64,000 nt of DNA. Origin: Auanema rhodensis. Taxonomy: Eukaryota; Animalia; Nematoda. The notes under the pieces were generated by a model. It saw nothing but the letters and a program-made list of their open reading frames with translations. It was not told where the DNA came from and searched no databases. Numbering within the stretch: the first letter of the stretch is position 1; the number at the start of each line of letters is the position of its first letter. Both the position numbers and the translations under genes were made by a program. The stretch lies in NCBI GenBank assembly GCA_964057225.1, contig OZ059899.1, positions 17,608,001-17,672,000 of the forward strand, written 5' to 3'. This document shows, piece after piece, positions 23,965 to 64,000 of this stretch.

Positions 23965-24146
23965 TGCTTCCAAAAACATTTTGACAAAAATTTTTCCGAA
24001 AAATTTCAAAATAATTTCGCAAAAAGTAGATGTTTTTAGATTTCTTTTTTCAAGGCAAAGACGATGGACAAAGTTATTCAACGAAAAAATTAATTCTGCA
24101 GGGTGAAAATCGAGGATATATGTGTGAACTTATATCAGTTGATATC

Positions 24147-36200: not shown

Positions 36201-39200
36201 TGAAAAAAGATGCATTAGTGTATGTTGAGTTTCCATGTACACTCAACATTGCTTCCAAAAACATTTTTACAAAAATTTTTCCGAAAAATTTCGAAATAAT
36301 TTCGCAAAAAGTAGATGTTTTTAGATTCCTTTTTTCAAGGCAAAGACGATGGACAAAGTAATTCAACGAAAAAATTAATTCTGCAGGGTGAAAATCGAGG
36401 ATATAAGTGTGAACTTATATCAGTTGATATCTCGGTGCATTTTTAAGCTAGCGCAAATCTGATAACACAGATCGACGCAGCTTAAAAATCCGCATCGAAT
36501 GCACTATACTACATTGAGAAATGCTTGATACAAAAATTAGTTATGATCGTTTGAAAAAAGATGCATTAGTGTATGTTGAGTTTCCATGTACACTCAACAT
36601 TGCTTCCAAAAACATTTTGACAAAAATTTTTCCGAAAAATTTCAAAATAATTTTGCAAAAAGTAGATGTTTTTAGATTCCTTTTTTCAAGGCAAAGACGA
36701 TGGACAAAGTTATTCAACGAAAAAATTAATTCTGCAGGGTGAAAATCGAGGATATAAGTGTGAACTTATATCAGTTGATATCTCGGTGCATTTTTAAGCT
36801 AGCGCAAATCTGATAACACAGATCGACGCAGCTTAAAAATCCGCATCGAATGCACTATACTACATTGAAAAACGCTTAATACAAAAATTAGTTATGATCG
36901 TTTGAAAAAAGATGCATTAGTGTATGTTGAGTTTCCATGTACACTCAACATTGCTTCCAAAAACATTTTGACAAAAATTTTTCCGAAAAATTTCAAAATA
37001 ATTTTGCAAAAAGTAGATGTTTTTAGATTTCTTTTTTCAAGGCAAAGACGATGGACAAAGTTATTCAACGAAAAAATTAATTCTGCAGGGTGAAAATCGA
37101 GGATATAAGTGTGAACTTATATCAGTTGATATCTCGGTGCATTTTTAAGCTAGCGCAAATCTGATAACACAGATCGAAGCAGCTTAAAAATCCGCATCGA
37201 TTGCACTATACTACATTGAGAAACGCATAATACAAAACTTAGTTATGATCGTTTGAAAAAAGATGCATTAGTGTATGTTGAGTTTCCATGTACACTCAAC
37301 ATTGCTTCCAAAAACATTTTTACAAAAATTTTTCCGAAAAATTTCGAAATAATTTCGCAAAAAGTAGATGTTTTTAGATTCCTTTTTTCAAGGCAAAGAC
37401 GATGGACATTGTTATTCAACGAAAAAATTGATTCTGCAGGGTGAAAATCGAGGATATAAGTGTGAACTTATATCAGTTGATATCTCGGTGCATTTTTAAG
37501 CTAGCGCAAATCTGATAACACAGATCGACGCAGCTTAAAAATCCGCATCGATTGCACTATACTACATTGAGAAACGCTTAATACAAAACTTAGTTATGAT
37601 CGTTTGAAAAAAGATGCATTAGTGTATGTTGAGTTTCCATGTACACTCAACATTGCTTCCAAAAACATTTTTACAAAAATTTTTCCGAAAAATTTCGAAA
37701 TAATTTCGCAAAAAGTAGATGTTTTTAGATTCCTTTTTTCAAGGCAAAGACGATGGACATTGTTATTCAACGAAAAAATTGATTCTGCAGGGTGAAAATC
37801 GAGGATATAAGTGTGAACTTATATCAGTTGATATCTCGGTGCATTTTTAAGCTAGCGCAAATCTGATAACACAGATCGACGCAGCTTAAAAATCCGCATC
37901 GATTGCACTATACTACATTGAGAAATGCTTAATACAAAAATTAGTTATGATCGTTTGAAAAAAGATGCATTAGTGTATGTTGAGTTTCCATGTACACTCA
38001 ACATTGCTTCCAAAAACATTTTGACAAAAATTTTTCCGAAAAATTTCAAAATAATTTTGCAAAAAGTAGATGTTTTTAGATTCCTTTTTTCAAGGCAAAG
38101 ACGATGGACAAAGTTATTCAACGAAAAAATTAATTCTGCAGGGTGAAAATCGAGGATATAAGTGTGAACTTATATCAGTTGATATCTCGGTGCATTTTTA
38201 AGCTAGCGCAAATCTGATAACACAGATCGACGCAGCTTAAAAATCCGCATCGATTGCACTATACTACATTGAGAAACGCATAATACAAAACTTAGTTATG
38301 ATCGTTTGAAAAAAGATGCATTAGTGTATGTTGAGTTTCCATGTACACTCAACATTGCTTCCAAAAACATTTTTACAAAAATTTTTCCGAAAAATTTCGA
38401 AATAATTTCGCAAAAAGTAGATGTTTTTAGATTCCTTTTTTCAAGGCAAAGACGATGGACAAAGTAATTCAACGAAAAAATTAATTCTGCAGGGTGAAAA
38501 TCGAGGATATAAGTGTGAACTTATATCAGTTGATATCTCGGTGCATTTTTAAGCTAGCGCAAATCTGATAACACAGATCGACGCAGCTTAAAAATCCGCA
38601 TCGATTGCACTATACTACATTGAGAAACGCATAATACAAAACTTAGTTATGATCGTTTGAAAAAAGATGCATTAGTGTATGTTGAGTTTCCATGTACACT
38701 CAACATTGCTTCCAAAAACATTTTTACAAAAATTTTTCCGAAAAATTTCGAAATAATTTCGCAAAAAGTAGATGTTTTTAGATTCCTTTTTTCAAGGCAA
38801 AGACGATGGACAAAGTAATTCAACGAAAAAATTAATTCTGCAGGGTGAAAATCGAGGATATAAGTGTGAACTTATATCAGTTGATATCTCGGTGCATTTT
38901 TAAGCTAGCGCAAATCTGATAACACAGATCGACGCAGCTTAAAAATCCGCATCGAATGCACTATACTACATTGAGAAATGCTTGATACAAAAATTAGTTA
39001 TGATCGTTTGAAAAAAGATGCATTAGTGTATGTTGAGTTTCCATGTACACTCAACATTGCTTCCAAAAACATTTTGACAAAAATTTTTCCGAAAAATTTC
39101 AAAATAATTTTGCAAAAAGTAGATGTTTTTAGATTCCTTTTTTCAAGGCAAAGACGATGGACAAAGTTATTCAACGAAAAAATTAATTCTGCAGGGTGAA

Positions 39201-42200
39201 AATCGAGGATATAAGTGTGAACTTATATCAGTTGATATCTCGGTGCATTTTTAAGCTAGCGCAAATCTGATAACACAGATCGACGCAGCTTAAAAATCCG
39301 CATCGAATGCACTATACTACATTGAAAAACGCTTAATACAAAAATTAGTTATGATCGTTTGAAAAAAGATGCATTAGTGTATGTTGAGTTTCCATGTACA
39401 CTCAACATTGCTTCCAAAAACATTTTGACAAAAATTTTTCCGAAAAATTTCAAAATAATTTTGCAAAAAGTAGATGTTTTTAGATTTCTTTTTTCAAGGC
39501 AAAGACGATGGACAAAGTTATTCAACGAAAAAATTAATTCTGCAGGGTGAAAATCGAGGATATAAGTGTGAACTTATATCAGTTGATATCTCGGTGCATT
39601 TTTAAGCTAGCGCAAATCTGATAACACAGATCGAAGCAGCTTAAAAATCCGCATCGATTGCACTATACTACATTGAGAAACGCATAATACAAAACTTAGT
39701 TATGATCGTTTGAAAAAAGATGCATTAGTGTATGTTGAGTTTCCATGTACACTCAACATTGCTTCCAAAAACATTTTTACAAAAATTTTTCCGAAAAATT
39801 TCGAAATAATTTCGCAAAAAGTAGATGTTTTTAGAATCCTTTTTTCAAGGCAAAGACGATGGACATTGTTATTCAACGAAAAAATTGATTCTGCAGGGTG
39901 AAAATCGAGGATATAAGTGTGAACTTATATCAGTTGATATCTCGGTGCATTTTTAAGCTAGCGCAAATCTGATAACACAGATCGACGCAGCTTAAAAATC
40001 CGCATCAAATGCACTATACTACATTGAAAAACGCTTAATACAAAAATTAGTTATGATCGTTTGAAAAAAGATGCATTAGTGTATGTTGAGTTTCCATGTA
40101 CACTCAACATTGCTTCCAAAAACATTTTGACAAAAATTTTTCCGAAAAATTTCAAAATAATTTCGCAAAAAGTAGATGTTTTTAGATTCCTTTTTTCAAG
40201 GCAAAGACGATGGACAATGTTATTCAACGAAAAAATTAATTCTGCAGGGTGAAAATCGAGGATATAAGTGTGAACTTATATCAGTTGATATCTCGGTGCA
40301 TTTTTAAGCTAGCGCAAATCTGATAACACAGATCGACGCAGCTTAAAAATCCGCATCGAATGCACTATACTACATTGAAAAACGCTTAATACAAAAATTA
40401 GTTATGATCGTTTGAAAAATGATGCATTAGTGTATGTTGAGTTTCCATGTACACTCAACATTGCTTCCAAAAACATTTTGACAAAAATTTTTCCAAAAAA
40501 TTTCAAAATAATTTCGCAAAAAGTAAAAGTTTTTAGATTTCTTTTTTCAAGGCAAAGACGATGGACAATGTTATTCAACGAAAAAATTAATTCTGCAGGG
40601 TGAAAATCGAGGATATAAGTGTGAACTTATATCAGTTGATATCTCGGTGCATTTTTAAGCTAGCGCAAATCTGATAACACAGATCGACGCAGCTTAAAAA
40701 TCCGCATCGATTGCACTATACTACATTGAGAAATGCTTGATACAAAAATTAGTTATGATCGTTTGAAAAATGATGCATTAGTGTATGTTGAGTTTCCATG
40801 TACACTCAACATTGCTTCCAAAAACATTTTGACAAAAATTTTTCCGAAAAATTTCAAAATAATTTTGCAAAAAGTAGATGTTTTTAGATTCCTTTTTTCA
40901 AGGCAAAGACGATGGACAAAGTTATTCAACGAAAAAATTAATTCTGCAGGGTGAAAATCGAGGATATAAGTGTGAACTTATATCAGTTGATATCTCGGTG
41001 CATTTTTAAGCTAGCGCAAATCTGATAACACAGATCGACGCAGCTTAAAAATCCGCATCGATTGCACTATACTACATTGAGAAACGCATAATACAAAACT
41101 TAGTTATGATCGTTTGAAAAAAGATGCATTAGTGTATGTTGAGTTTCCATGTACACTCAACATTGCTTCCAAAAACATTTTGACAAAAATTTTTCCGAAA
41201 AATTTCAAAATAATTTTGCAAAAAGTAGATGTTTTTAGATTCCTTTTTTCAAGGCAAAGACGATGGACAAAGTTATTCAACGAAAAAATTAATTCTGCAG
41301 GGTGAAAATCGAGGATATAAGTGTGAACTTATATCAGTTGATATCTCGGTGCATTTTTAAGCTAGCGCAAATCTGATAACACAGATCGACGCAGCTTAAA
41401 AATCCGCATCGATTGCACTATACTACATTGAGAAACGCATAATACAAAACTTAGTTATGATCGTTTGAAAAAAGATGCATTAGTGTATGTTGAGTTTCCA
41501 TGTACACTCAACATTGCTTCCAAAAACATTTTTACAAAAATTTTTCCGAAAAATTTCGAAATAATTTCGCAAAAAGTAGATGTTTTTAGATTCCTTTTTT
41601 CAAGGCAAAGACGATGGACAAAGTAATTCAACGAAAAAATTAATTCTGCAGGGTGAAAATCGAGGATATAAGTGTGAACTTATATCAGTTGATATCTCGG
41701 TGCATTTTTAAGCTAGCGCAAATCTGATAACACAGATCGACGCAGCTTAAAAATCCGCATCGATTGCACTATACTACATTGAGAAACGCATAATACAAAA
41801 CTTAGTTATGATCGTTTGAAAAAAGATGCATTAGTGTATGTTGAGTTTCCATGTACACTCAACATTGCTTCCAAAAACATTTTTACAAAAATTTTTCCGA
41901 AAAATTTCGAAATAATTTCGCAAAAAGTAGATGTTTTTAGATTCCTTTTTTCAAGGCAAAGACGATGGACAAAGTAATTCAACGAAAAAATTAATTCTGC
42001 AGGGTGAAAATCGAGGATATAAGTGTGAACTTATATCAGTTGATATCTCGGTGCATTTTTAAGCTAGCGCAAATCTGATAACACAGATCGACGCAGCTTA
42101 AAAATCCGCATCGATTGCACTATACTACATTGAGAAATGCTTGATACAAAAATTAGTTATGATCGTTTGAAAAAAGATGCATTAGTGTATGTTGAGTTTC

Positions 42201-45200
42201 CATGTACACTCAACATTGCTTCCAAAAACATTTTGACAAAAATTTTTCCGAAAAATTTCAAAATAATTTTGCAAAAAGTAGATGTTTTTAGATTCCTTTT
42301 TTCAAGGCAAAGACGATGGACAAAGTTATTCAACGAAAAAATTAATTCTGCAGGGTGAAAATCGAGGATATAAGTGTGAACTTATATCAGTTGATATCTC
42401 GGTGCATTTTTAAGCTAGCGCAAATCTGATAACACAGATCGACGCAGCTTAAAAATCCGCATCGAATGCACTATACTACATTGAGAAACGCTTAATACAA
42501 AACTTAGTTATGATCGTTTGAAAAATGATGCATTAGTGTATGTTGAGTTTCCATGTACACTCAACATTGCTTCCAAAAACATTTTGACAAAAATTTTTCC
42601 GAAAAATTTCAAAATAATTTCGCAAAAAGTAGATGTTTTTAGATTTCTTTTTTCAAGGCAAAGACGATGGACAAAGTTATTCAACGAAAAAATTAATTCT
42701 GCAGGGTGAAAATCGAGGATATAAGTGTGAACTTATATCAGTTGATATCTCGGTGCATTTTTAAGCTAGCGCAAATCTGATAACACAGATCGACGCAGCT
42801 CAAAAATCCGCATCGAATGCACTATACTACATTGAGAAACGCTTAATACAAAACTTAGTTATGATCGTTTGAAAAATGATGCATTAGTGTATGTTGAGTT
42901 TCCATGTACACTCAACATTGCTTCCAAAAACATTTTTACAAAAATTTTTCCGAAAAATTTCGAAATAATTTCGCAAAAAGTAGATGTTTTTAGATTCCTT
43001 TTTTCAAGGCAAAGACGATGGACATTGTTATTCAACGAAAAAATTGATTCTGCAGGGTGAAAATCGAGGATATAAGTGTGAACTTATATCAGTTGATATC
43101 TCGGTGCATTTTTAAGCTAGCGCAAATCTGATAACACAGATCGACGCAGCTTAAAAATCCGCATCGAATGCACTATACAACATTGAGAAACGCTTAATAC
43201 AAAAATTAGTTATGATCGTTTGAAAAATGATGCATTAGTGTATGTTGAGTTTCCATGTACACTCAACATTGCTTCCAAAAACATTTTGACAAAAATTTTT
43301 CCGAAAAATTTCGAAATAATTTCGCAAAAAGTAGATGTTTTCAGATTTCTTTTTTCAAGGCAAAGACGATGGACATTGTTATTCAACGAAAAAATTGATT
43401 CTGCAGGGTGAAAATCGAGGATATAAGTGTGAACTTATATCAGTTGATATCTCGGTGCATTTTTAAGCTAGCGCAAATCTGATAACACAGATCGACGCAG
43501 CTTAAAAATCCGCATCGATTGCACTATACTACATTGAGAAACGCTTAATACAAAACTTAGTTATGATCGTTTGAAAAAAGATGCATTAGTGTATGTTGAG
43601 TTTCCATGTACACTCAACATTGCTTCCAAAAACATTTTTACAAAAATTTTTCCGAAAAATTTCGAAATAATTTCGCAAAAAGTAGATGTTTTTAGATTCC
43701 TTTTTTCAAGGCAAAGACGATGGACATTGTTATTCAACGAAAAAATTGATTCTGCAGGGTGAAAATCGAGGATATAAGTGTGAACTTATATCAGTTGATA
43801 TCTCGGTGCATTTTTAAGCTAGCGCAAATCTGATAACACAGATCGACGCAGCTTAAAAATCCGCATCGAATGCACTATACAACATTGAGAAACGCTTAAT
43901 ACAAAAATTAGTTATGATCGTTTGAAAAATGATGCATTAGTGTATGTTGAGTTTCCATGTACACTCAACATTGCTTCCAAAAACATTTTGACAAAAATTT
44001 TTCCGAAAAATTTCGAAATAATTTCGCAAAAAGTAGATGTTTTCAGATTTCTTTTTTCAAGGCAAAGACGATGGACATTGTTATTCAACGAAAAAATTGA
44101 TTCTGCAGGGTGAAAATCGAGGATATAAGTGTGAACTTATATCAGTTGATATCTCGGTGCATTTTTAAGCTAGCGCAAATCTGATAACACAGATCGACGC
44201 AGCTTAAAAATCCGCATCGATTGCACTATACTACATTGAGAAACGCTTAATACAAAACTTAGTTATGATCGTTTGAAAAAAGATGCATTAGTGTATGTTG
44301 AGTTTCCATGTACACTCAACATTGCTTCCAAAAACATTTTTACAAAAATTTTTCCGAAAAATTTCGAAATAATTTCGCAAAAAGTAGATGTTTTTAGATT
44401 CCTTTTTTCAAGGCAAAGACGATGGACATTGTTATTCAACGAAAAAATTGATTCTGCAGGGTGAAAATCGAGGATATAAGTGTGAACTTATATCAGTTGA
44501 TATCTCGGTGCATTTTTAAGCTAGCGCAAATCTGATAACACAGATCGACGCAGCTTAAAAATCCGCATCGATTGCACTATACTACATTGAGAAATGCTTG
44601 ATACAAAAATTAGTTATGATCGTTTGAAAAAAGATGCATTAGTGTATGTTGAGTTTCCATGTACACTCAACATTGCTTCCAAAAACATTTTGACAAAAAT
44701 TTTTCCGAAAAATTTCAAAATAATTTTGCAAAAAGTAGATGTTTTTAGATTCCTTTTTTCAAGGCAAAGACGATGGACAAAGTTATTCAACGAAAAAATT
44801 AATTCTGCAGGGTGAAAATCGAGGATATAAGTGTGAACTTATATCAGTTGATATCTCGGTGCATTTTTAAGCTAGCGCAAATCTGATAACACAGATCGAC
44901 GCAGCTTAAAAATCCGCATCGATTGCACTATACTACATTGAGAAACGCTTAATACAAAACTTAGTTATGATCGTTTGAAAAAAGATGCATTAGTGTATGT
45001 TGAGTTTCCATGTACACTCAACATTGCTTCCAAAAACATTTTTACAAAAATTTTTCCGAAAAATTTCGAAATAATTTCGCAAAAAGTAGATGTTTTTAGA
45101 TTCCTTTTTTCAAGGCAAAGACGATGGACATTGTTATTCAACGAAAAAATTGATTCTGCAGGGTGAAAATCGAGGATATAAGTGTGAACTTATATCAGTT

Positions 45201-46799
45201 GATATCTCGGTGCATTTTTAAGCTAGCGCAAATCTGATAACACAGATCGACGCAGCTTAAAAATCCGCATCGATTGCACTATACTACATTGAGAAATGCT
45301 TGATACAAAAATTAGTTATGATCGTTTGAAAAATGATGCATTAGTGTATGTTGAGTTTCCATGTACACTCAACATTGCTTCCAAAAACATTTTGACAAAA
45401 ATTTTTCCGAAAAATTTCAAAATAATTTTGCAAAAAGTAGATGTTTTTAGATTCCTTTTTTCAAGGCAAAGACGATGGACAAAGTTATTCAACGAAAAAA
45501 TTAATTCTGCAGGGTGAAAATCGAGGATATAAGTGTGAACTTATATCAGTTGATATCTCGGTGCATTTTTAAGCTAGCGCAAATCTGATAACACAGATCG
45601 ACGCAGCTTAAAAATCCGCATCGATTGCACTATACTACATTGAGAAACGCTTAATACAAAACTTAGTTATGATCGTTTGAAAAAAGATGCATTAGTGTAT
45701 GTTGAGTTTCCATGTACACTCAACATTGCTTCCAAAAACATTTTTACAAAAATTTTTCCGAAAAATTTCGAAATAATTTCGCAAAAAGTAGATGTTTTTA
45801 GATTCCTTTTTTCAAGGCAAAGACGATGGACATTGTTATTCAACGAAAAAATTGATTCTGCAGGGTGAAAATCGAGGATATAAGTGTGAACTTATATCAG
45901 TTGATATCTCGGTGCATTTTTAAGCTAGCGCAAATCTGATAACACAGATCGACGCAGCTTAAAAATCCGCATCGATTGCACTATACTACATTGAGAAATG
46001 CTTGATACAAAAATTAGTTATGATCGTTTGAAAAAAGATGCATTAGTGTATGTTGAGTTTCCATGTACACTCAACATTGCTTCCAAAAACATTTTGACAA
46101 AAATTTTTCCGAAAAATTTCAAAATAATTTTGCAAAAAGTAGATGTTTTTAGATTCCTTTTTTCAAGGCAAAGACGATGGACAAAGTTATTCAACGAAAA
46201 AATTAATTCTGCAGGGTGAAAATCGAGGATATAAGTGTGAACTTATATCAGTTGATATCTCGGTGCATTTTTAAGCTAGCGCAAATCTGATAACACAGAT
46301 CGACGCAGCTTAAAAATCCGCATCGATTGCACTATACTACATTGAGAAACGCATAATACAAAACTTAGTTATGATCGTTTGAAAAAAGATGCATTAGTGT
46401 ATGTTGAGTTTCCATGTACACTCAACATTGCTTCCAAAAACATTTTTACAAAAATTTTTCCGAAAAATTTCGAAATAATTTCGCAAAAAGTAGATGTTTT
46501 TAGATTCCTTTTTTCAAGGCAAAGACGATGGACAAAGTAATTCAACGAAAAAATTAATTCTGCAGGGTGAAAATCGAGGATATAAGTGTGAACTTATATC
46601 AGTTGATATCTCGGTGCATTTTTAAGCTAGCGCAAATCTGATAACACAGATCGACGCAGCTTAAAAATCCGCATCGATTGCACTATACTACATTGAGAAA
46701 CGCATAATACAAAACTTAGTTATGATCGTTTGAAAAAAGATGCATTAGTGTATGTTGAGTTTCCATGTACACTCAACATTGCTTCCAAAAACATTTTTA

Positions 46800-48320
46800 C
46801 AAAAATTTTCCCTAAAAATTTCAAAATAATTTTACAAAAAGTAGATGTTTTTAGATTCCTTTTTTCAAGGTGAAGACGATGGACAATGTTATTCAACAAA
46901 AAAATTAATTCTTCAGGGTGAAAATCGAGATTATAAGTGTGAACTTATATCAGTTGATATCTCGGTGCATTTTTAAGCTAGCGCAAATCTGATAACACAG
47001 ATCGACGCAGCTTAAAAATCCGCATCGAATGCACTATATTACATTGAGAAACCCTCAATACAAAAATTAGTTATGATCGTTTAGAAAATGATGTATTAGT
47101 GTATGTTGAGTTTCCATGTACACTCAACATTGCTTCCAAAACATTTTGACAAAAATTTTCCCGAAAAATTTCAAAATAATTTCACAAAAAGTAGATGTTT
47201 TTAGATTTCTTTTTTCAAGGCAAAGACGATGGACAATGTTATTCAACAAAAAAATTAATTCTTCAGGGTGAAAATCGAGGATATAAGTGTGAACTTATAA
47301 CAGTTGATATCTCGGTGCATTTTAAAGATAGCGCAAATCTGATAACATAGATCGACGCAGCTTAAAAATCCCCATCGAATGCACTATACTACATTGAGAA
47401 ACGCTCAATACAAAAATTAGTTATGATCGTTTGAAAAATGATGCATTAGTGTATGTTGAGTTTCCATGTACACTCAACATTGCTTCCAAAAACATTTTGA
47501 CAAAAATTTTCCCTAAAAATTTCAAAATATTTTCACAAAAAGTAGATGTTTTCAGATTTTTTTTTTAAGGCGAAGACGATGGACATTGTTATTCAACGAA
47601 AAAATTAATTCTCCAGGGTGAAAATCGAGGATATAAGTGTAAACTTATATCAGTTGATATCTCGGTGCATTTTAAAGATAGCGCAAATCTGATAACACAG
47701 ATCGACGCAGCTTAAAAATCCGCATCGAATGCACTATACTACATTGAGAAACGCTTGATACGAAAATTAGTTATGATCGTTTGAAAAATGATGCATTAGT
47801 GTATGTTGAGTTTCCATGTACACTCAACATTGCTTCCAAAAACATTTTGACAAAAATTTTCCCTAAAAATTTCAAAATAATTTTACAAAAAGTAGATGTT
47901 TTTAGATTCCTTTTTTCAAGGTGAAGACGATGGACAAGGTTATTCAACAAAAAAATTAATTCTTCAGGGTGAAAATCGAGGATATAAGTGTGAACTTATA
48001 TCAGTTGATATATCGGTGCATTTTAAAGATAGCGCAAATCTGATAACATAGATCGACGCAGCTTAAAAATCCGCATCGAAGGCACTATACTACATTGAGA
48101 AACGCTCAATACAAAAATTAGTCATGATCGTTTGAAAAATGATGCATTAGTGTATGTTGAGTTTCCATGTACACTCAACATTGCTTTCAAAAACATTTTG
48201 ACAAAAATTTTACCTAAAAATTTCAAAATAATTTTACAAAAAGTAGATGTTTTTAGATTCCTTTTTTCAAGGCAAAGACGATGGACAATGTTATTCAACG
48301 AAAAAATCAATTTTTCAGGG
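46800..48320 (+). repeat. Island of divergent left-type 351-mers within the right array (net 1402 bp, two 1-bp deletions)
   Basis: Alleles cttcaggg/ctccaggg/tttcaggg, ccctaaa, ttcacaaaa, aaggtgaag, aaagatagc and gtcatg match the reverse complement of left-array alleles. Phase shifts by -2 (48132 instead of 48134). Confidence 0.92.
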
Positions 48321-51009
48321 TGAAAATCGAGGATATAAGTGTGAACTTATATCAGTTGATATCTCGGTGCATTTTTAAGCTAGCGCAAATCTGATAACAC
48401 AGATCGACGCAGCTTAAAAATCCGCATCGAATGCACTATACTACATTGAGAAATGCTTGATACAAAAATTAGTTATGATCGTTTGAAAAAAGATGCATTA
48501 GTGTATGTTGAGTTTCCATGTACACTCAACATTGCTTCCAAAAACATTTTGACAAAAATTTTTCCGAAAAATTTCAAAATAATTTTGCAAAAAGTAGATG
48601 TTTTTAGATTCCTTTTTTCAAGGCAAAGACGATGGACAAAGTTATTCAACGAAAAAATTAATTCTGCAGGGTGAAAATCGAGGATATAAGTGTGAACTTA
48701 TATCAGTTGATATCTCGGTGCATTTTTAAGCTAGCGCAAATCTGATAACACAGATCGACGCAGCTTAAAAATCCGCATCGAATGCACTATACTACATTGA
48801 AAAACGCTTAATACAAAAATTAGTTATGATCGTTTGAAAAAAGATGCATTAGTGTATGTTGAGTTTCCATGTACACTCAACATTGCTTCCAAAAACATTT
48901 TGACAAAAATTTTTCCGAAAAATTTCAAAATAATTTTGCAAAAAGTAGATGTTTTTAGATTCCTTTTTTCAAGGCAAAGACGATGGACAAAGTTATTCAA
49001 CGAAAAAATTAATTCTGCAGGGTGAAAATCGAGGATATAAGTGTGAACTTATATCAGTTGATATCTCGGTGCATTTTTAAGCTAGCGCAAATCTGATAAC
49101 ACAGATCGACGCAGCTTAAAAATTCGCATCGATTGCACTATACTACATTGAGAAACGCATAATACAAAACTTAGTTATGATCGTTTGAAAAAAGATGCAT
49201 TAGTGTATGTTGAGTTTCCATGTACACTCAACATTGCTTCCAAAAACATTTTTACAAAAATTTTTCCGAAAAATTTCGAAATAATTTCGCAAAAAGTAGA
49301 TGTTTTTAGAATCCTTTTTTCAAGGCAAAGACGATGGACATTGTTATTCAACGAAAAAATTGATTCTGCAGGGTGAAAATCGAGGATATAAGTGTGAACT
49401 TATATCAGTTGATATCTCGGTGCATTTTTAAGCTAGCGCAAATCTGATAACACAGATCGACGCAGCTTAAAAATCCGCATCAAATGCACTATACTACATT
49501 GAAAAACGCTTAATACAAAAGTTAGTTATGATCGTTTGAAAAAAGATGCATTAGTGTATGTTGAGTTTCCATGTACACTCAACATTGCTTCCAAAAACAT
49601 TTTGACAAAAATTTTTCCGAAAAATTTCAAAATAATTTCGCAAAAAGTAGATGTTTTTAGATTCCTTTTTTCAAGGCAAAGACGATGGACAATGTTATTC
49701 AACGAAAAAATTAATTCTGCAGGGTGAAAATCGAGGATATAAGTGTGAACTTATATCAGTTGATATCTCGGTGCATTTTTAAGCTAGCGTAAATCTGATA
49801 ACACAGATCGACGCAGCTTAAAAATCCGCATCGAATGCACTATACTACATTGAAAAACGCTTAATACAAAAATTAGTTATGATCGTTTGAAAAATGATGC
49901 ATTAGTGTATGTTGAGTTTCCATGTACACTCAACATTGCTTCCAAAAACATTTTGACAAAAATTTTTCCAAAAAATTTCAAAATAATTTCGCAAAAAGTA
50001 AAAGTTTTTAGATTTCTTTTTTCAAGGCAAAGACGATGGACAATGTTATTCAACGAAAAAATTAATTCTGCAGGGTGAAAATCGAGGATATAAGTGTGAA
50101 CTTATATCAGTTGATATCTCGGTGCATTTTTAAGCTAGCGCAAATCTGATAACACAGATCGACGCAGCTTAAAAATCCGCATCGAATGCACTATACTACA
50201 TTGAAAAACGCTTAATACAAAAATTAGTTATGATCGTTTGAAAAAAGATGCATTAGTGTATGTTGAGTTTCCATGTACACTCAACATTGCTTCCAAAAAC
50301 ATTTTGACAAAAATTTTTCCAAAAAATTTCAGAATAATTTCGCAAAAAGTAAATGTTTTTAGATTCCTTTTTTCAAGGCAAAGACGATGGACAATGTTAT
50401 TCAACGAAAAAATTAATTCTGCAGGGTGAAAATCTAGGATATAAGTGTGAACTTATATCAGTTGATATCTCGGTGCATTTTTAAGCTAGCGCAAATCTGA
50501 TAACACAGATCGACGCAGCTTAAAAATCCGCATCGAATTCACTATACTACATTGAAAAACGCTTAATACAAAAATTAGTTATGATTGTTTGAAAAAAGAT
50601 GCATTAGTGTATGTTGAGTTTCCATGTACACTCAACATTGCTTCCAAAAACATTTTGACAAAAATTTTTCCGAAAAATTTCAAAATAATTTTGCAAAAAG
50701 TAGATGTTTTTAGATTCCTTTTTTCAAGGCAAAGACGATGGACAAAGTTATTCAACGAAAAAATTAATTCTGCAGGGTGAAAATCGAGGATATAAGTGTG
50801 AACTTATATCAGTTGATATCTCGGTGCATTTTCAAGCTAGCGCAAATCTGATAACACAGATCGACGCAGCTTAAAAATCCGCATCGATTGCACTATACTA
50901 CATTGAGAAACGCATAATACAAAACTTAGTTATGATCGTTTGAAAAAAGATGCATTAGTGTATGTTGAGTTTCCATGTACACTCAACATTGCTTCCAAAA
51001 ACATTTTTA

Positions 51010-54000
51010 CAAAAATTTTTCCGAAAAATTTCGAAATAATTTCGCAAAAAGTAGATGTTTTTAGAATCCTTTTTTCAAGGCAAAGACGATGGACATTGTT
51101 ATTCAACGAAAAAATTGATTCTGCAGGGTGAAAATCGAGGATATAAGTGTGAACTTATATCAGTTGATATCTCGGTGCATTTTTAAGCTAGCGCAAATCT
51201 GATAACACAGATCGACGCAGCTTAAAAATCCGCATCAAATGCACTATACTACATTGAAAAACGCTTAATACAAAAATTAGTTATGATCGTTTGAAAAAAG
51301 ATGCATTAGTGTATGTTGAGTTTCCATGTACACTCAACATTGCTTCCAAAAACATTTTGACAAAAATTTTTCCAAAAAATTTCAAAATAATTTCGCAAAA
51401 AGTAAAAGTTTTTAGATTTCTTTTTTCAAGGCAAAGACGATGGACAATGTTATTCAACGAAAAAATTAATTCTGCAGGGTGAAAATCGAGGATATAAGTG
51501 TGAACTTATATCAGTTGATATCTCGGTGCATTTTTAAGCTAGCGCAAATCTGATAACACAGATCGACGCAGCTTAAAAATCCGCATCGATTGCACTATAC
51601 TACATTGAGAAACGCTTAATACAAAAATTAGTTATGATCGTTTGAAAAAAGATGCATTAGTGTATGTTGAGTTTCCATGTACACTCAACATTGCTTCCAA
51701 AACATTTTGACAAAAATTTTTCCAAAAAATTTCAAAATAATTTCGCAAAAAGTAAATGTTTTTAGATTCCTTTTTTCAAGGCAAAGACGATGGACAATGT
51801 TATTCAACGAAAAAATTAATTCTGCAGGGTGAAAATCTAGGATATAAGTGTGAACTTATATCAGTTGATATCTCGGTGCATTTTTAAGCTAGCACAAATC
51901 TGATAACACAGATCGACGCAGCTTAAAAATCCGCATCGAATTCACTATACTACATTGAAAAACGCTTAATACAAAAATTAGTTATGATTGTTTGAAAAAA
52001 GATGCATTAGTGTATGTTGAGTTTCCATGTACACTCAACATTGCTTCCAAAAACATTTTGACAAAAATTTTTCCAAAAAATTTCAAGATAATTTCGCAAA
52101 AAGTAAATGTTTTTAGATTCCTTTTTTCAAGGCAAAGACGATGGACAATGTTATTCAACGAAAAAATTAATTCTGCAGGGTGAAAATCGAGGATATAAGT
52201 GTGAACTTATATCAGTTGATATCTCGGTGCATTTTTAAGCTAGCGCAAATCTGATAACATAGATCGACGCAGCTTAAAAATCCGCATCGAATGCACTATA
52301 CTACATTAAAAAACGCTTAATACAAAAATTAGTTATGATCGTTTGAAAAATGATGCATTAGTGTATGTTGAGTTTCCATGTACACTCAACATTGCTTCCA
52401 AAAACATTTTGACAAAAATTTTTCCGAAAAATTTCAAAATAATTTCGCAAAAAGTAGATGTTTTTAGATTCCTTTTTTCAAGGCAAAGACGATGGACAAT
52501 GTTATTCAACGAAAAAATTAATTCTGCAGGGTGAAAATCGAGGATATAAGTGTGAACTTATATCAGTTGATATCTCGGTGCATTTTTAAGCTAGCGCAAA
52601 TCTGATAACACAGATCGACGCAGCTTAAAAATCCGCATCGAATGCACTATACTACATTGAAAAACGCTTAATACAAAAATTAGTTATGATCGTTTGAAAA
52701 AAGATGCATTAGTGTATGTTGAGTTTCCATGTACACTCAACATTGCTTCCAAAAACATTTTGACAAAAATTTTTCCGAAAAATTTCGAAATAATTTCGCA
52801 AAAAGTAGATGTTTTTAGAATCCTTTTTTCAAGGCAAAGACGATGGACATTGTTATTCAACGAAAAAATTGATTCTGCAGGGTGAAAATCGAGGATATAA
52901 GTGTGAACTTATATCAGTTGATATCTCGGTGCATTTTTAAGCTAGCGCAAATCTGATAACACAGATCGACGCAGCTTAAAAATCCGCATCAAATGCACTA
53001 TACTACATTGAAAAACGCTTAATACAAAAATTAGTTATGATCGTTTGAAAAAAGATGCATTAGTGTATGTTGAGTTTCCATGTACACTCAACATTGCTTC
53101 CAAAAACATTTTGACAAAAATTTTTCCAAAAAATTTCAAAATAATTTCGCAAAAAGTAAAAGTTTTTAGATTTCTTTTTTCAAGGCAAAGACGATGGACA
53201 ATGTTATTCAACGAAAAAATTAATTCTGCAGGGTGAAAATCGAGGATATAAGTGTGAACTTATATCAGTTGATATCTCGGTGCATTTTTAAGCTAGCGCA
53301 AATCTGATAACACAGATCGACGCAGCTTAAAAATCCGCATCGATTGCACTATACTACATTGAGAAACGCTTAATACAAAAATTAGTTATGATCGTTTGAA
53401 AAAAGATGCATTAGTGTATGTTGAGTTTCCATGTACACTCAACATTGCTTCCAAAACATTTTGACAAAAATTTTTCCAAAAAATTTCAAAATAATTTCGC
53501 AAAAAGTAAATGTTTTTAGATTCCTTTTTTCAAGGCAAAGACGATGGACAATGTTATTCAACGAAAAAATTAATTCTGCAGGGTGAAAATCTAGGATATA
53601 AGTGTGAACTTATATCAGTTGATATCTCGGTGCATTTTTAAGCTAGCACAAATCTGATAACACAGATCGACGCAGCTTAAAAATCCGCATCGAATTCACT
53701 ATACTACATTGAAAAACGCTTAATACAAAAATTAGTTATGATTGTTTGAAAAAAGATGCATTAGTGTATGTTGAGTTTCCATGTACACTCAACATTGCTT
53801 CCAAAAACATTTTGACAAAAATTTTTCCAAAAAATTTCAAGATAATTTCGCAAAAAGTAAATGTTTTTAGATTCCTTTTTTCAAGGCAAAGACGATGGAC
53901 AATGTTATTCAACGAAAAAATTAATTCTGCAGGGTGAAAATCGAGGATATAAGTGTGAACTTATATCAGTTGATATCTCGGTGCATTTTTAAGCTAGCGC

Positions 54001-54530
54001 AAATCTGATAACATAGATCGACGCAGCTTAAAAATCCGCATCGAATGCACTATACTACATTAAAAAACGCTTAATACAAAACTTAGTTATGATCGTTTGA
54101 AAAATGATGCATTAGTGTATGTTGAGTTTCCATGTACACTCAACATTGCTTCCAAAAACATTTTGACAAAAATTTTTCCGAAAAATTTCAAAATAATTTC
54201 GCAAAAAGTAGATGTTTTTAGATTCCTTTTTTCAAGGCAAAGACGATGGACAATGTTATTCAACGAAAAAATTAATTCTGCAGGGTGAAAATCGAGGATA
54301 TAAGTGTGAACTTATATCAGTTGATATCTCGGTGCATTTTTAAGCTAGCGCAAATCTGATAACACAGATCGACGCAGCTTAAAAATCCGCATCGAATGCA
54401 CTATACTACATTGAAAAACGCTTAATACAAAAATTAGTTATGATCGTTTGAAAAAAGATGCATTAGTGTATGTTGAGTTTCCATGTACACTCAACATTGC
54501 TTCCAAAAACATTTTGACAAAAATTTTTCC
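51010..54530 (+). repeat. 5-mer higher-order repeat, 1754 bp (5x351-1), two copies
   Basis: A shared 1-bp deletion (ttccaaaacattt, about 51700 and 53454) and the alleles agcacaaatc, gaattcact, ataacatagat and cattaaaaaacg all recur at +1754. Confidence 0.9.
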
Positions 54531-57500
54531 AAAAAATTTCAAAATAATTTCGCAAAAAGTAAATGTTTTTAGATTCCTTTTTTCAAGGCAAAGACGATGG
54601 ACAATGTTATTCAACGAAAAAATTAATTCTGCAGGGTGAAAATCTAGGATATAAGTGTGAACTTATATCAGTTGATATCTCGGTGCATTTTTAAGCTAGC
54701 GCAAATCTGATAACACAGATCGACGCAGCTTAAAAATCCGCATCGAATGCACTATACTACATTGAAAAACGCTTAATACAAAAATTAGTTATGATTGTTT
54801 GAAAAAAGATGCATTAGTGTATGTTGAGTTTCCATGTACACTCAACATTGCTTCCAAAAACATTTTGACAAAAATTTTTCCGAAAAATTTCAAAATAATT
54901 TCGCAAAAAGTAGATGTTTTTAGATTCCTTTTTTCAAGGCAAAGACGATGGACAATGTTATTCAACGAAAAAATTAATTCTGCAGGGTGAAAATCGAGGA
55001 TATAAGTGTGAACTTATATCAGTTGATATCTCGGTGCATTTTTAAGCTAGCGCAAATCTGATAACACAGATCGACGCAGCTTAAAAATCCGCATCGAATG
55101 CACTATACTACATTGAAAAACGCTTAATACAAAAATTAGTTATGATTGTTTGAAAAAAGATGCATTAGTGTATGTTGAGTTTCCATGTACACTCAACATT
55201 GCTTCCAAAAACATTTTGACAAAAATTTTTCCAAAAAATTTCAAAATAATTTCGCAAAAAGTAAATGTTTTTAGATTCCTTTTTTCAAGGCAAAGACGAT
55301 GGACAATGTTATTCAACGAAAAAATTAATTCTGCAGGGTGAAAATCTAGGATATAAGTGTGAACTTATATCAGTTGATATCTCGGTGCATTTTTAAGCTA
55401 GCGCAAATCTGATAACACAGATCGACGCAGCTTAAAAATCCGCATCGAATGCACTATACTGCATTGAGAAACGCTTAATACAAAAGTTAGTTATGATCGT
55501 TTGAAAAATGATGCATTAGTGTATGTTGAGTTTCCATGTACACTCAACATTGCTTCCAAAAACATTTTGACAAAAATTTTTCCGAAAAATTTCAAAATAA
55601 TTTCGCAAAAAGTAGATGTTTTTAGATTCCTTTTTTCAAGGCAAAGACGATGGACAATGTTATTCAACGAAAAAATTAATTCTGCAGGGTGAAAATCGAG
55701 GATATAAGTGTGAACTTATATCAGTTGATATCTCGGTGCATTTTTAAGCTAGCGCAAATCTGATAACACAGATCGACGCAGCTTAAAAATCCGCATCGAA
55801 TGCACTATACTACATTGAAAAACGCTCAATACAAAAATTAGTTATGATCGTTTGAAAAAAGATGCATTAGTGTATGTTGAGTTTCCATGTACACTCAACA
55901 TTGCTTCCAAAAACATTTTGACAAAAATTTTTCCAAAAAATTTCAAAATAATTTCGCAAAAAGTAAATGTTTTTAGATTCCTTTTTTCAAGGCAAAGACG
56001 ATGGACAATGTTATTCAACGAAAAAATTAATTCTGCAGGGTGAAAATCGAGGATATAAGTGTGAACTTATATCAGTTGATATCTCGGTGCATTTTTAAGC
56101 TAGCGCAAATCTGATAACACAGATCGACGCAGCTTAAAAATCCGCATCGAATGCACTATACTACATTGAAAAACGCTTAATACAAAAATTAGTTATGATT
56201 GTTTGAAAAAAGATGCATTAGTGTATGTTGAGTTTCCATGTACACTCAACATTGCTTCCAAAAACATTTTGACAAAAATTTTTCCAAAAAATTTCAAAAT
56301 AATTTCGCAAAAAGTAAATGTTTTTAGATTCCTTTTTTCAAGGCAAAGACGATGGACAATGTTATTCAACGAAAAAATTAATTCTGCAGGGTGAAAATCT
56401 AGGATATAAGTGTGAACTTATATCAGTTGATATCTCGGTGCATTTTTAAGCTAGCGCAAATCTGATAACACAGATCGACGCAGCTTAAAAATCCGCATCG
56501 AATGCACTATACTACATTGAAAAACGCTTAATACAAAAATTAGTTATGATCGTTTGAAAAAAGATGCATTAGTGTATGTTGAGTTTCCATGTACACTCAA
56601 CATTGCTTCCAAAAACATTTTGACAAAAATTTTTCCAAAAAATTTCAAAATAATTTCGCAAAAAGTAAATGTTTTTAGATTCCTTTTTTCAAGGCAAAGA
56701 CGATGGACAATGTTATTCAACGAAAAAATTAATTCTGCAGGGTGAAAATCTAGGATATAAGTGTGAACTTATATCAGTTGATATCTCGGTGCATTTTTAA
56801 GCTAGCGCAAATCTGATAACACAGATCGACGCAGCTTAAAAATCCGCATCGAATGCACTATACTACATTGAAAAACGCTTAATACAAAAATTAGTTATGA
56901 TCGTTTGAAAAAAGATGCATTAGTGTATGTTGAGTTTCCATGTACACTCAACATTGCTTCCAAAAACATTTTGACAAAAATTTTTCCAAAAAATTTCAAA
57001 ATAATTTCGCAAAAAGTAAATGTTTTTAGATTCCTTTTTTCAAGGCAAAGACGATGGACAATGTTATTCAACGAAAAAATTAATTCTGCAGGGTGAAAAT
57101 CTAGGATATAAGTGTGAACTTATATCAGTTGATATCTCGGTGCATTTTTAAGCTAGCGCAAATCTGATAACACAGATCGACGCAGCTTAAAAATCCGCAT
57201 CGAATGCACTATACTACATTGAAAAACGCTTAATACAAAAATTAGTTATGATCGTTTGAAAAATGATGCATTAGTGTATGTTGAGTTTCCATGTACACTC
57301 AACATTGCTTCCAAAAACATTTTGACAAAAATTTTTCCGAAAAATTTCAAAATAATTTCGCAAAAAGTAGATGTTTTTAGATTCCTTTTTTCAAGGCAAA
57401 GACGATGGACAATGTTATTCAACGAAAAAATTAATTCTGCAGGGTGAAAATCGAGGATATAAGTGTGAACTTATATCAGTTGATATCTCGGTGCATTTTT

Positions 57501-60500
57501 AAGCTAGCGCAAATCTGATAACACAGATCGACGCAGCTTAAAAATCCGCATCGAATGCACTATACTACATTGAAAAACGCTTAATACAAAAATTAGTTAT
57601 GATCGTTTGAAAAAAGATGCATTAGTGTATGTTGAGTTTCCATGTACACTCAACATTGCTTCCAAAAACATTTTGACAAAAATTTTTCCAAAAAATTTCA
57701 AAATAATTTCGCAAAAAGTAAATGTTTTTAGATTCCTTTTTTCAAGGCAAAGACGATGGACAATGTTATTCAACGAAAAAATTAATTCTGCAGGGTGAAA
57801 ATCTAGGATATAAGTGTGAACTTATATCAGTTGATATCTCGGTGCATTTTTAAGCTAGCGCAAATCTGATAACACAGATCGACGCAGCTTAAAAATCCGC
57901 ATCGAATGCACTATACTACATTGAAAAACGCTTAATACAAAAATTAGTTATGATCGTTTGAAAAATGATGCATTAGTGTATGTTGAGTTTCCATGTACAC
58001 TCAACATTGCTTCCAAAAACATTTTGACAAAAATTTTTCCGAAAAATTTCAAAATAATTTCGCAAAAAGTAGATGTTTTTAGATTCCTTTTTTCAAGGCA
58101 AAGACGATGGACAATGTTATTCAACGAAAAAATTAATTCTGCAGGGTGAAAATCGAGGATATAAGTGTGAACTTATATCAGTTGATATCTCGGTGCATTT
58201 TTAAGCTAGCGCAAATCTGATAACACAGATCGACGCAGCTTAAAAATCCGCATCGAATGCACTATACTACATTGAAAAACGCTTAATACAAAAATTAGTT
58301 ATGATCGTTTGAAAAAAGATGCATTAGTGTATGTTGAGTTTCCATGTACACTCAACATTGCTTCCAAAAACATTTTGACAAAAATTTTTCCAAAAAATTT
58401 CAAGATAATTTCGCAAAAAGTAAATGTTTTTAGATTCCTTTTTTCAAGGCAAAGACGATGGACAATGTTATTCAACGAAAAAATTAATTCTGCAGGGTGA
58501 AAATCTAGGATATAAGTGTGAACTTATATCAGTTGATATCTCGGTGCATTTTTAAGCTAGCGCAAATCTGATAACACAGATCGACGCAGCTTAAAAATCC
58601 GCATCGAATGCACTATACTACATTGAAAAACGCTTAATACAAAAATTAGTTATGATCGTTTGAAAAATGATGCATTAGTGTATGTTGAGTTTCCATGTAC
58701 ACTCAACATTGCTTCCAAAAACATTTTGACAAAAATTTTTCCAAAAAATTTCAAAATAATTTCGCAAAAAGTAAATGTTTTTAGATTCCTTTTTTCAAGG
58801 CAAAGACGATGGACAATGTTATTCAACGAAAAAATTAATTCTGCAGGGTGAAAATCTAGGATATAAGTGTGAACTTATATCAGTTGATATCTCGGTGCAT
58901 TTTTAAGCTAGCGCAAATCTGATAACACAGATCGACGCAGCTTAAAAATCCGCATCGAATGCACTATACTACATTGAAAAACGCTTAATACAAAAATTAG
59001 TTATGATCGTTTGAAAAAAGATGCATTAGTGTATGTTGAGTTTCCATGTACACTCAACATTGCTTCCAAAAACATTTTGACAAAAATTTTTCCAAAAAAT
59101 TTCAAAATAATTTCGCAAAAAGTAAATGTTTTTAGATTCCTTTTTTCAAGGCAAAGACGATGGACAATGTTATTCAACGAAAAAATTAATTCTGCAGGGT
59201 GAAAATCTAGGATATAAGTGTGAACTTATATCAGTTGATATCTCGGTGCATTTTTAAGCTAGCGCAAATCTGATAACACAGATCGACGCAGCTTAAAAAT
59301 CCGCATCGAATGCACTATACTACATTGAAAAACGCTTAATACAAAAATTAGTTATGATCGTTTGAAAAAAGATGCATTAGTGTATGTTGAGTTTCCATGT
59401 ACACTCAACATTGCTTCCAAAAACATTTTGACAAAAATTTTTCCAAAAAATTTCAAAATAATTTCGCAAAAAGTAAATGTTTTTAGATTCCCTTTTTCAA
59501 GGCAAAGACGATGGACAATGTTATTCAACGAAAAAATTAATTCTGCAGGGTGAAAATCTAGGATATAAGTGTGAACTTATATCAGTTGATATCTCGGTGC
59601 ATTTTTAAGCTAGCGCAAATCTGATAACACAGATCGACGCAGCTTAAAAATCCGCATCGAATGCACTATACTACATTGAAAAACGCTTAATACAAAAATT
59701 AGTTATGATCGTTTGAAAAAAGATGCATTAGTGTATGTTGAGTTTCCATGTACACTCAACATTGCTTCCAAAAACATTTTGACAAAAATTTTTCCAAAAA
59801 ATTTCAAAATAATTTCGCAAAAAGTAAATGTTTTTAGATTCCTTTTTTCAAGGCAAAGACGATGGACAATGTTATTCAACGAAAAAATTAATTCTGCAGG
59901 GTGAAAATCTAGGATATAAGTGTGAACTTATATCAGTTGATATCTCGGTGCATTTTTAAGCTAGCGCAAATCTGATAACACAGATCGACGCAGCTTAAAA
60001 ATCCGCATCGAATGCACTATACTACATTGAAAAACGCTTAATACAAAAATTAGTTATGATCGTTTGAAAAAAGATGCATTAGTGTATGTTGAGTTTCCAT
60101 GTACACTCAACATTGCTTCCAAAAACATTTTGACAAAAATTTTTCCAAAAAATTTCAAAATAATTTCGCAAAAAGTAAATGTTTTTAGATTCCCTTTTTC
60201 AAGGCAAAGACGATGGACAATGTTATTCAACGAAAAAATTAATTCTGCAGGGTGAAAATCTAGGATATAAGTGTGAACTTATATCAGTTGATATCTCGGT
60301 GCATTTTTAAGCTAGCGCAAATCTGATAACACAGATCGACGCAGCTTAAAAATCCGCATCGAATGCACTATACTACATTGAAAAACGCTTAATACAAAAA
60401 TTAGTTATGATCGTTTGAAAAAAGATGCATTAGTGTATGTTGAGTTTCCATGTACACTCAACATTGCTTCCAAAAACATTTTGACAAAAATTTTTCCAAA

Positions 60501-63500
60501 AAATTTCAAAATAATTTCGCAAAAAGTAAATGGTTTTAGATTCCTTTTTTCAAGGCAAAGACGATGGACAATGTTATTCAACGAAAAAATTAATTCTGCA
60601 GGGTGAAAATCGAGGATATAAGTGTGAACTTATATCAGTTGATATCTCGGTGCATTTTTAAGCTAGCGCAAATCTGATAACACAGATCGACGCAGCTTAA
60701 AAATCCGCATCGAATGCACTATACTACATTGAAAAACGCTTAATACAAAAATTAGTTATGATTGTTTGAAAAAAGATGCATTAGTGTATGTTGAGTTTCC
60801 ATGTACACTCAACATTGCTTCCAAAAACATTTTGACAAAAATTTTTCCAAAAAATTTCAAGATAATTACGCAAAAAGTAAATGTTTTTAGATTCCTTTTT
60901 TCAAGGCAAAGACGATGGACAATGTTATTCAACGAAAAAATTAATTCTGCAGGGTGAAAATCGAGGATATAAGTGTGAACTTATATCAGTTGATATCTCG
61001 GTGCATTTTTAAGCTAGCGCAAATCTGATAACACAGATCGACGCAGCTTAAAAATCCGCATCGAATGCACTATACTACATTGAAAAACGCTTAATACAAA
61101 AATTAGTTATGATCGTTTGAAAAATGATGCATTAGTGTATGTTGAGTTTCCATGTACACTCAACATTGCTTCCAAAAACATTTTGACAAAAATTTTTCCG
61201 AAAAATTTCAAAATAATTTCGCAAAAAGTAGATGTTTTTAGATTCCTTTTTTCAAGGCAAAGACGATGGACAATGTTATTCAACGAAAAAATTAATTCTG
61301 CAGGGTGAAAATCGAGGATATAAGTGTGAACTTATATCAGTTGATATCTCGGTGCATTTTTAAGCTAGCGCAAATCTGATAACACAGATCGACGCAGCTT
61401 AAAAATCCGCATCGAATGCACTATACTACATTGAAAAACGCTTAATACAAAAATTAGTTATGATTGTTTGAAAAAAGATGCATTAGTGTATGTTGAGTTT
61501 CCATGTACACTCAACATTGCTTCCAAAAACATTTTGACAAAAATTTTTCCAAAAAATTTCAAGATAATTACGCAAAAAGTAAATGTTTTTAGATTCCTTT
61601 TTTCAAGGCAAAGACGATGGACAATGTTATTCAACGAAAAAATTAATTCTGCAGGGTGAAAATCGAGGATATAAGTGTGAACTTATATCAGTTGATATCT
61701 CGGTGCATTTTTAAGCTAGCGCAAATCTGATAACACAGATCGACGCAGCTTAAAAATCCGCATCGAATGCACTATACTACATTGAAAAACGCTTAATACA
61801 AAAATTAGTTATGATCGTTTGAAAAAAGATGCATTAGTGTATGTTGAGTTTCCATGTACACTCAACATTGCTTCCAAAAACATTTTGACAAAAATTTTTC
61901 CAAAAAATTTCAAAATAATTTCGCAAAAAGTAAATGTTTTTAGATTCCTTTTTTCAAGGCAAAGACGATGGACAATGTTATTCAACGAAAAAATTAATTC
62001 TGCAGGGTGAAAATCTAGGATATAAGTGTGAACTTATATCAGTTGATATCTCGGTGCATTTTTAAGCTAGCGCAAATCTGATAACACAGATCGACGCAGC
62101 TTAAAAATCCGCATCGAATGCACTATACTACATTGAAAAACGCTTAATACAAAAATTAGTTATGATCGTTTGAAAAAAGATGCATTAGTGTATGTTGAGT
62201 TTCCATGTACACTCAACATTGCTTCCAAAAACATTTTGACAAAAATTTTTCCAAAAAATTTCAAAATAATTTCGCAAAAAGTAAATGTTTTTAGATTCCT
62301 TTTTTCAAGGCAAAGACGATGGACAATGTTATTCAACGAAAAAATTAATTCTGCAGGGTGAAAATCTAGGATATAAGTGTGAACTTATATCAGTTGATAT
62401 CTCGGTGCATTTTTAAGCTAGCGCAAATCTGATAACACAGATCGACGCAGCTTAAAAATCCGCATCGAATGCACTATACTACATTGAAAAACGCTCAATA
62501 CAAAAATTAGTTATGATCGTTTGAAAAATGATGCATTAGTGTATGTTGAGTTTCCATGTACACTCAACATTGCTTCCAAAAACATTTTGACAAAAATTTT
62601 TCCAAAAAATTTCAAGATAATTTCGCAAAAAGTAAATGTTTTTAGATTCCTTTTTTCAAGGCAAAGACGATGGACAATGTTATTCAACGAAAAAATTAAT
62701 TCTGCAGGGTGAAAATCGAGGATATAAGTGTGAACTTATATCAGTTGATATCTCGGTGCATTTTTAAGCTAGCGCAAATCTGATAACACAGATCGACGCA
62801 GCTTAAAAATCCGCATCGAATGCACTATACTACATTGAAAAACGCTTAATACAAAAATTAGTTATGATCGTTTGAAAAATGATGCATTAGTGTATGTTGA
62901 GTTTCCATGTACACTCAACATTGCTTCCAAAAACATTTTGACAAAAATTTTTCCGAAAAATTTCAAAATAATTTCGCAAAAAGTAGATGTTTTTAGATTC
63001 CTTTTTTCAAGGCAAAGACGATGGACAATGTTATTTAACGAAAAAATTAATTCTGCAGGGTGAAAATCGAGGATATAAGTGTGAACTTATATCAGTTGAT
63101 ATCTCGGTGCATTTTTAAGCTAGCGCAAATCTGATAACACAGATCGACGCAGCTTAAAAATCCGCATCGAATGCACTATACTACATTGAAAAACGCTTAA
63201 TACAAAAATTAGTTATGATCGTTTGAAAAAAGATGCATTAGTGTATGTTGAGTTTCCATGTACACTCAACATTGCTTCCAAAAACATTTTGACAAAAATT
63301 TTTCCAAAAAATTTCAAAATAATTTCGCAAAAAGTAAATGTTTTTAGATTCCTTTTTTCAAGGCAAAGACGATGGACAATGTTATTCAACGAAAAAATTA
63401 ATTCTGCAGGGTGAAAATCTAGGATATAAGTGTGAACTTATATCAGTTGATATCTCGGTGCATTTTTAAGCTAGCGCAAATCTGATAACACAGATCGACG

Positions 63501-64000
63501 CAGCTTAAAAATCCGCATCGAATGCACTATACTACATTGAAAAACGCTTAATACAAAAATTAGTTATGATCGTTTGAAAAAAGATGCATTAGTGTATGTT
63601 GAGTTTCCATGTACACTCAACATTGCTTCCAAAAACATTTTGACAAAAATTTTTCCAAAAAATTTCAAAATAATTTCGCAAAAAGTAAATGTTTTTAGAT
63701 TCCTTTTTTCAAGGCAAAGACGATGGACAATGTTATTCAACGAAAAAATTAATTCTGCAGGGTGAAAATCTAGGATATAAGTGTGAACTTATATCAGTTG
63801 ATATCTCGGTGCATTTTTAAGCTAGCGCAAATCTGATAACACAGATCGACGCAGCTTAAAAATCCGCATCGAATGCACTATACTACATTGAAAAACGCTT
63901 AATACAAAAATTAGTGATGATCGTTTGAAAAAAGATGCATTAGTGTATGTTGAGTTTCCATGTACACTCAACATTGCTTCCAAAAACATTTTGACAAAAA

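Follow-up and report, generated by a model that had tools for sequence, protein, structure and literature searches.

A donor-matched 1.5-kb tract in a satellite array of the nematode Auanema rhodensis is consistent with non-crossover ectopic gene conversion from an inverted array 93 kb away

Results

The stretch of DNA analyzed here (the window) is 64 kb long and corresponds to C7:17,608,001-17,672,000, where C7 is contig OZ059899.1 of a 180.9-Mb assembly in 112 contigs. It consists of satellite DNA throughout and is AT-rich, with a G+C content of ~31%. Arrays in the window were delimited with TRF (Table 1). The near end of a minus-oriented array of a 351-bp repeat (L type, the general subfamily) is followed by a 182-bp satellite and then by a plus-oriented array of a second 351-bp subfamily (R type), which bears a PstI site. 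Most of the minus array lies outside the window, and the donor described below is located within it, ~47 kb past the left window edge. The satellite block is probably germline-restricted DNA of a nematode with programmed DNA elimination.

TABLE 1 Positions of the arrays, the sister copies, the tract, and its junctions in the window
Feature	Position	Strand	Details
L-type 351-bp array, near end	1..11023	minus	TRF; whole array C7:17501577-17619023
182-bp satellite, two orientations	11037-13544 and 13546-23810		TRF; between the 351-bp arrays
R-subfamily 351-bp array (recipient), PstI-bearing	23810..64000	plus	TRF, PstI spacing, variable-site matrix
Sister copy A, uninterrupted	37431..40710	plus	~8 kb upstream; both island flanks match
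Island copy B, left flank	45504..46798	plus	Sister 37431-38725, offset 8073; 1 difference in 1295 bp
Island copy B, right flank	48375..50185	plus	Sister 38900-40710, offset 9475; 5 differences in 1811 bp
Four whole donor-type monomers	46911..48312	plus	350+350+351+351 = 1402 bp net gain
Captured tract, maximal	46799..48374	plus	1576 bp; reverse complement of C7:17,560,097-17,561,672
Captured tract, minimal	46810..48315	plus	1506 bp; outermost sites where B follows donor against sister
Left switch window	46799..46809	plus	11 bp common to donor and recipient; columns 240-250
Right switch window	48316..48374	plus	59 bp common to donor and recipient; columns 4-62; contains the 9-bp-stem inverted repeat

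The 182-bp satellite flips orientation at ~13545. The R array adjoins this repeat at column 66 of the 351-bp monomer and the L array stops at column 324; the two junctions are therefore not mirror images. Within the L array, a monomer that lacks 63 internal bp (seed positions 105-167) is present twice, at 6455-7030 and 8849-9424 (6743-9136). The two copies lie 2394 bp apart and mark a recent duplication of ~6.8 monomers.

The L and R consensus sequences differ at eight diagnostic columns (3, 146, 179, 251, 254, 275, 313, and 339). Over 317 kb, subfamily tracks orientation: 236 plus monomers are R type at columns 3, 275, and 313, and minus monomers are L type. An 18-mer bearing the PstI site of the R subfamily has 532 forward copies, and all forward matches listed (the first 100 places) are on C7; among the matches listed, the R subfamily appears to be small and local.

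PstI sites in the R array recur every 351 bp from 24096 to 46560, and the next site is found at 48664. The resulting interval of 2104 bp is the sole gap in the R array and comprises five monomers without the site. An earlier note on this DNA, made from the sequence, had described an island of monomers here that lack PstI, had placed them after a chimeric monomer, and had reported that the surrounding monomer series recurs from ~8 kb upstream with a gain of 1402 bp. All three observations were confirmed. In a variable-site matrix built from an alignment of 142 monomers, L-type alleles extend from column 251 of the monomer at 46560 to column 3 of the monomer at 48313, covering the four island monomers, the final third of the monomer before them, and three bases at the start of the monomer after them. 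The monomer preceding the island is thus chimeric, with R alleles up to 46798 and L alleles from 46810. The island monomers start at 46911, 47261, 47611, and 47962 (350, 350, 351, and 351 bp), and their identity to the R seed monomer is 94.9-95.7%, versus 97-100% for their neighbors.

The sister copy matches both flanks of the island without interruption. At an offset of 8073, positions 37500-38799 match 45573-46872; at an offset of 9475, positions 38900-40700 match 48375-50175. The difference between the offsets is the 1402-bp net gain of the island copy, which is the length of the four donor monomers taken together, two of them 350 bp long. The sister segment 38726-38899 is recipient-type sequence that is displaced by the tract in the island copy, and 104-174 bp of recipient sequence were overwritten. 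The sister copy is a paralogue that serves as a proxy for the pre-event state and is not the true pre-event allele.

To locate the donor, exact 23-mers carrying island alleles were counted genome-wide and then examined for co-occurrence at the island spacing. These 23-mers have between 35 and 1925 genome copies each, mostly in minus arrays. Three rarer alleles co-occur at the island spacing at only two other sites genome-wide, both in the upstream minus array of C7, and one of these two sites matches the entire tract. Over 1576 bp, the tract and this site differ by 0 mismatches and 0 gaps, the first mismatches being found at 46798 and 48375; the tract spans 4.3-4.5 monomers. The donor site is on the same contig, 93 kb upstream of the island, inside the inverted array, and the orientation switch lies 61 kb from the donor and 33 kb from the recipient. 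Donor and recipient diverge by 4-5%. The earlier note had assigned the island alleles to the left subfamily, in agreement with the variable-site matrix, and had additionally described private SNPs; the latter are not private, given their 23-mer counts, and the donor carries every one of them.

Among 253 kb of L arrays, the second-best alignment of the tract contains 30 mismatches. Furthermore, the island/donor pair is the longest exact inverted match in the contiguous 317 kb. The other long inverted matches of the 351-bp repeat in this region, of 1290 and 1139 bp, are partial and lead to paralogues of the donor series. The neighborhood of the donor (C7:17560000-17566000) is a local higher-order repeat with a 351+350+350-bp unit and a spacing of 1051 bp, which explains the partial exact matches. 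A shift of 12 monomers (4207 bp) is also seen in this higher-order repeat. For every whole island monomer, twins with zero differences are confined to the minus array, at C7:17.560-17.582 Mb, and the nearest plus-oriented monomers differ from the island monomers at 14-44 sites. Since the twins are native to the L array, copying proceeded from L to R.

Sister copy A, island copy B, and donor D were compared site by site. B is identical to A up to 46798 and from 48375 and is identical to D over 46810-48315; no sites matching neither A nor D and no interleaved A/D alleles were found in this three-way comparison. Both junctions are in monomer register, and each falls within sequence shared by donor and recipient. 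The tract is accordingly a contiguous donor-identical stretch with recipient sequence on either side. The donor site retains the tract and its L-type flanks and has gained no recipient alleles, which rules out reciprocal exchange. A crossover is likewise excluded, since the island flanks remain collinear with those of the sister copy and the 93-kb interval has kept its orientation. No target-site duplication, terminal repeats, or coding capacity was found in the tract, which is pure in-register satellite. Insertion of a transposable element was ruled out, as the tract replaces rather than duplicates sequence.

The right switch window contains an inverted repeat with a 9-bp perfect stem and a 4-base loop, in a 22-base stretch at 48332-48353 that corresponds to columns 20-41 of most monomers. 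It is found in 127 monomers of the window (110 plus and 17 minus) and is not specific to the island. It may be a cruciform or fork-stalling site.

The three-way comparison also bears on whether the island is ancestral and was lost from the sister copy by unequal crossing-over. In-register deletions of whole monomers are common in arrays. However, a one-breakpoint deletion would have left L alleles behind, and the sister copy is R type at 10 of 10 discriminating sites on the left and 12 of 12 on the right. In A coordinates, such a deletion demands a breakpoint that precedes 38737 and at the same time follows 38839, which is impossible; the island is therefore not ancestral on this account. Equally, because the tract overwrote 104-174 bp of recipient sequence, the sister copy is not derivable from the island copy by deletion. 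An old relic would also not be 100% identical to a single site in arrays whose monomers differ by 3-5%, and a paralogue 168 kb downstream (see below) has no island. We thus regard an ancestral island, which the earlier note had named among the outcomes that would overturn its reading, as extremely improbable. In line with this, the central claim of the note, that the island was captured by homology from an ectopic donor and is not an old relic, is supported by the exact donor, the in-register junctions, and a sister copy that deletion cannot produce.

The lengths of tract and gain were informative about a donor in the form of eccDNA excised from the L array. Circles made of whole numbers of satellite monomers are widespread and have been put forward as a route by which satellites spread (PMC7403614, PMC3225859). 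Integration of a circle by a single crossover requires that the tract equal the gain and that it start and end at the same column. In contrast, the tract measures at least 1506 bp and the gain 1402 bp. The tract begins in columns 240-251 but terminates in columns 3-62, and six sites distinguish the 104 bp at one end of it from the 104 bp at the other. Integration of a four-monomer circle through one crossover is refuted by a tract that is at least 104 bp longer than the gain and does not end at the column where it begins. Only a circle of at least five monomers acting as a conversion template would fit, and this extra step explains nothing more, because the linear chromosomal donor matches over the full length. 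We consider the eccDNA route very unlikely. Among the submechanisms listed in the earlier note, simple circle reintegration therefore fails, while long-tract conversion and template switching are both compatible with the data.

Between the sister copies, 6 of 3106 flank sites differ, a rate at which ~3 differences would be expected between island and donor; 0 were found (P value of about 0.05). The capture is thus probably younger than the local duplication that produced the sister copies, as judged from these counts.

A 34-mer across the junction between the 182-bp and 351-bp repeats has exactly two copies, at C7:17,631,793 and 17,800,016 (168,223 bp apart), indicating a segmental duplication of ~168 kb of the L / 182 / R module. 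Upstream on C7, orientation blocks at 17355001-17398684 (minus), 17410211-17474633 (plus), and 17501577-17619023 (minus) suggest at least one further copy of this module. In the 18 kb of the downstream paralogue that was examined (C7:17812001-17830000), PstI sites recur every 351 bp, with no gap, no L-type monomer, and no island. This paralogue is only 98-99.6% alike and is locally rearranged, and it shows the absence of the island rather than the exact pre-event state.

The island is the sole L block among ~255 plus monomers in the 317 kb examined. No transfer from R to L was seen. A minus monomer at C7:17567884 (98.3% identity to the R consensus) was considered as a candidate for reverse transfer and rejected, not being an R-type insert: it carries the L base at five of the eight diagnostic columns (3, 179, 251, 254, and 275) and the R base at columns 146, 313, and 339. 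The earlier note had concluded that the subfamilies exchange sequence. This is borne out for one event in one direction and does not hold as a generality.

Ten reverse matches of the PstI-bearing 18-mer are found on C5 and have only the column-3 G in common with R. In the minus 351-bp array at C5:2011001-2018000, the PstI site created by this G is present in about one-third of the monomers, in an alternating higher-order pattern. Interchromosomal transfer of R monomers was rejected as their origin, as they are non-R at four to six of the eight diagnostic columns. The PstI site of the C5 array was acquired independently.

Discussion

The product of the event, a donor tract of 1506-1576 bp that replaces 104-174 bp and adds 1402 bp, can be read directly from the compared sequences. 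Collectively, the findings suggest one recent, non-reciprocal, homology-directed repair event, namely a non-crossover ectopic gene conversion, probably by SDSA, accompanied by a four-monomer expansion. We assign this reading a probability of roughly 0.75. A break would have occurred in the R-type array, somewhere from column 240 of one monomer to column 62 of the following one. A broken end would then have invaded the inverted L-type array 93 kb away on the same chromosome, where ~1.5 kb would have been copied off the L template. The new strand would have re-annealed to the other end in monomer register, four monomers out of step, resulting in a longer array, an intact donor, and no inversion. 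SDSA is the most likely pathway, its break, strand invasion, and re-annealing all being reconstructed from the product. Divergence of 4-5% between donor and recipient usually suppresses homeologous recombination, which counts against the proposed repair event.

In terms of sequence, three routes could lead to the same product: SDSA, a replication-based template switch with return, and a double crossover involving an extrachromosomal copy of larger size. In a template switch of the BIR/FoSTeS type, a fork that had stalled or broken would move to the inverted array, copy 1.5 kb, and return in register. It predicts the same contiguous, non-reciprocal tract with switches in the 11- and 59-bp shared stretches, and inversions and orientation switches have occurred in this region before. 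However, microhomology-mediated switching typically leaves out-of-register or complex junctions, and none are present here: each switch keeps exact register and falls inside extended homology. We therefore consider a template switch unlikely.

A further explanation is that the island is an assembly or library artefact and is absent from the DNA of the animal. The structure is seen in the assembly alone, and 100% identity to the donor would be expected equally from an artefact. A 33-mer spanning the left junction is unique in the 181-Mb assembly; together with the 0 differences from the donor, this leaves no evolutionary mark of an existence in vivo, and satellite arrays are difficult to assemble. 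On the other hand, to produce this structure by artefact, two in-register switches would be required within 1.6 kb, the second leading back to the exact series of the sister copy, whereas ligation chimeras consist of a single junction at a random position. The germline genome of Auanema rhodense has been described from a HiFi/hifiasm assembly with terminal multi-megabase repeat blocks, in which most reads in repeats map uniquely (preprint 10.64898/2026.08.27.747507). If the assembly used here is the published one, reads of the 15-kb class would span the structure. Taken together, we judge an artefact to be slightly less probable still than a template switch.

Ectopic gene conversion with repeat expansion has precedents in several systems. 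In yeast, SDSA reportedly expands and contracts tandem repeats (work of Paques, Leung and Haber in 1998). Like the SDSA induced there by double-strand breaks, the event described here is non-crossover, has a contiguous tract, leaves the donor unchanged, and alters length by whole units through out-of-step re-annealing. Unlike the yeast work, which used an induced break and a designed donor, it is natural and concerns a metazoan satellite, the donor being inverted, 4-5% diverged, and 93 kb distant, and the break is deduced from its product. The arms of inverted repeats and palindromes, such as those of the human Y chromosome, undergo arm-to-arm gene conversion. Similarly, the exchange at this locus is non-reciprocal, involves inverted repeats of a single chromosome, and leaves the spacer in its orientation. 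It differs in that the arrays are not mirror-image arms, lying 61 and 33 kb from the orientation switch, and in that copy number changes in addition to homogenization. SDSA has been reviewed (PMC2062477).

Satellite spread has been attributed to interlocus gene conversion or eccDNA in Drosophila (Sproul et al. 2020, PMC7403614) and Tribolium (PMC11610590). As in those insects, satellite variants move here between arrays over long distances, and the same two mechanisms are candidates. The Drosophila satellite literature leaves interlocus conversion and circle reintegration as alternatives (PMC7403614), and the authors of the Drosophila and Tribolium work, as they state themselves, could neither separate the mechanisms nor pin down single donors. 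In contrast, a donor, junctions, and a pre-event proxy are present at this locus, and a simple circle fails. The event is thus of a known kind, ectopic non-crossover conversion with repeat expansion, and is unusually well resolved because donor, recipient, pre-event proxy, and both junctions have all been identified.

The tract itself is without function and documents the overwriting of a young local satellite subfamily by the general type. Evidence for the concerted evolution of satellites usually comes from population patterns, and single events with a known donor, recipient, and pre-event state and with junctions at base level are rare. As this locus shows, a template can be provided by a diverged, inverted array at a distance of 93 kb, and copy number can be altered along with sequence. 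The locus may also serve as a model for counting events of this kind across the genome, in the DNA that body cells discard. A broader and rather doubtful possibility is that break repair from inverted arrays with copy gain is a frequent route in the germline-restricted terminal blocks, by which the general type may overwrite local subfamilies and the blocks of every autosome may be kept alike, with breaks perhaps falling at a preferred position in the monomer, such as the hairpin of the right switch window. If this were true, the island would be the first example of the process caught in the act, and the mechanism would be measurable genome-wide.
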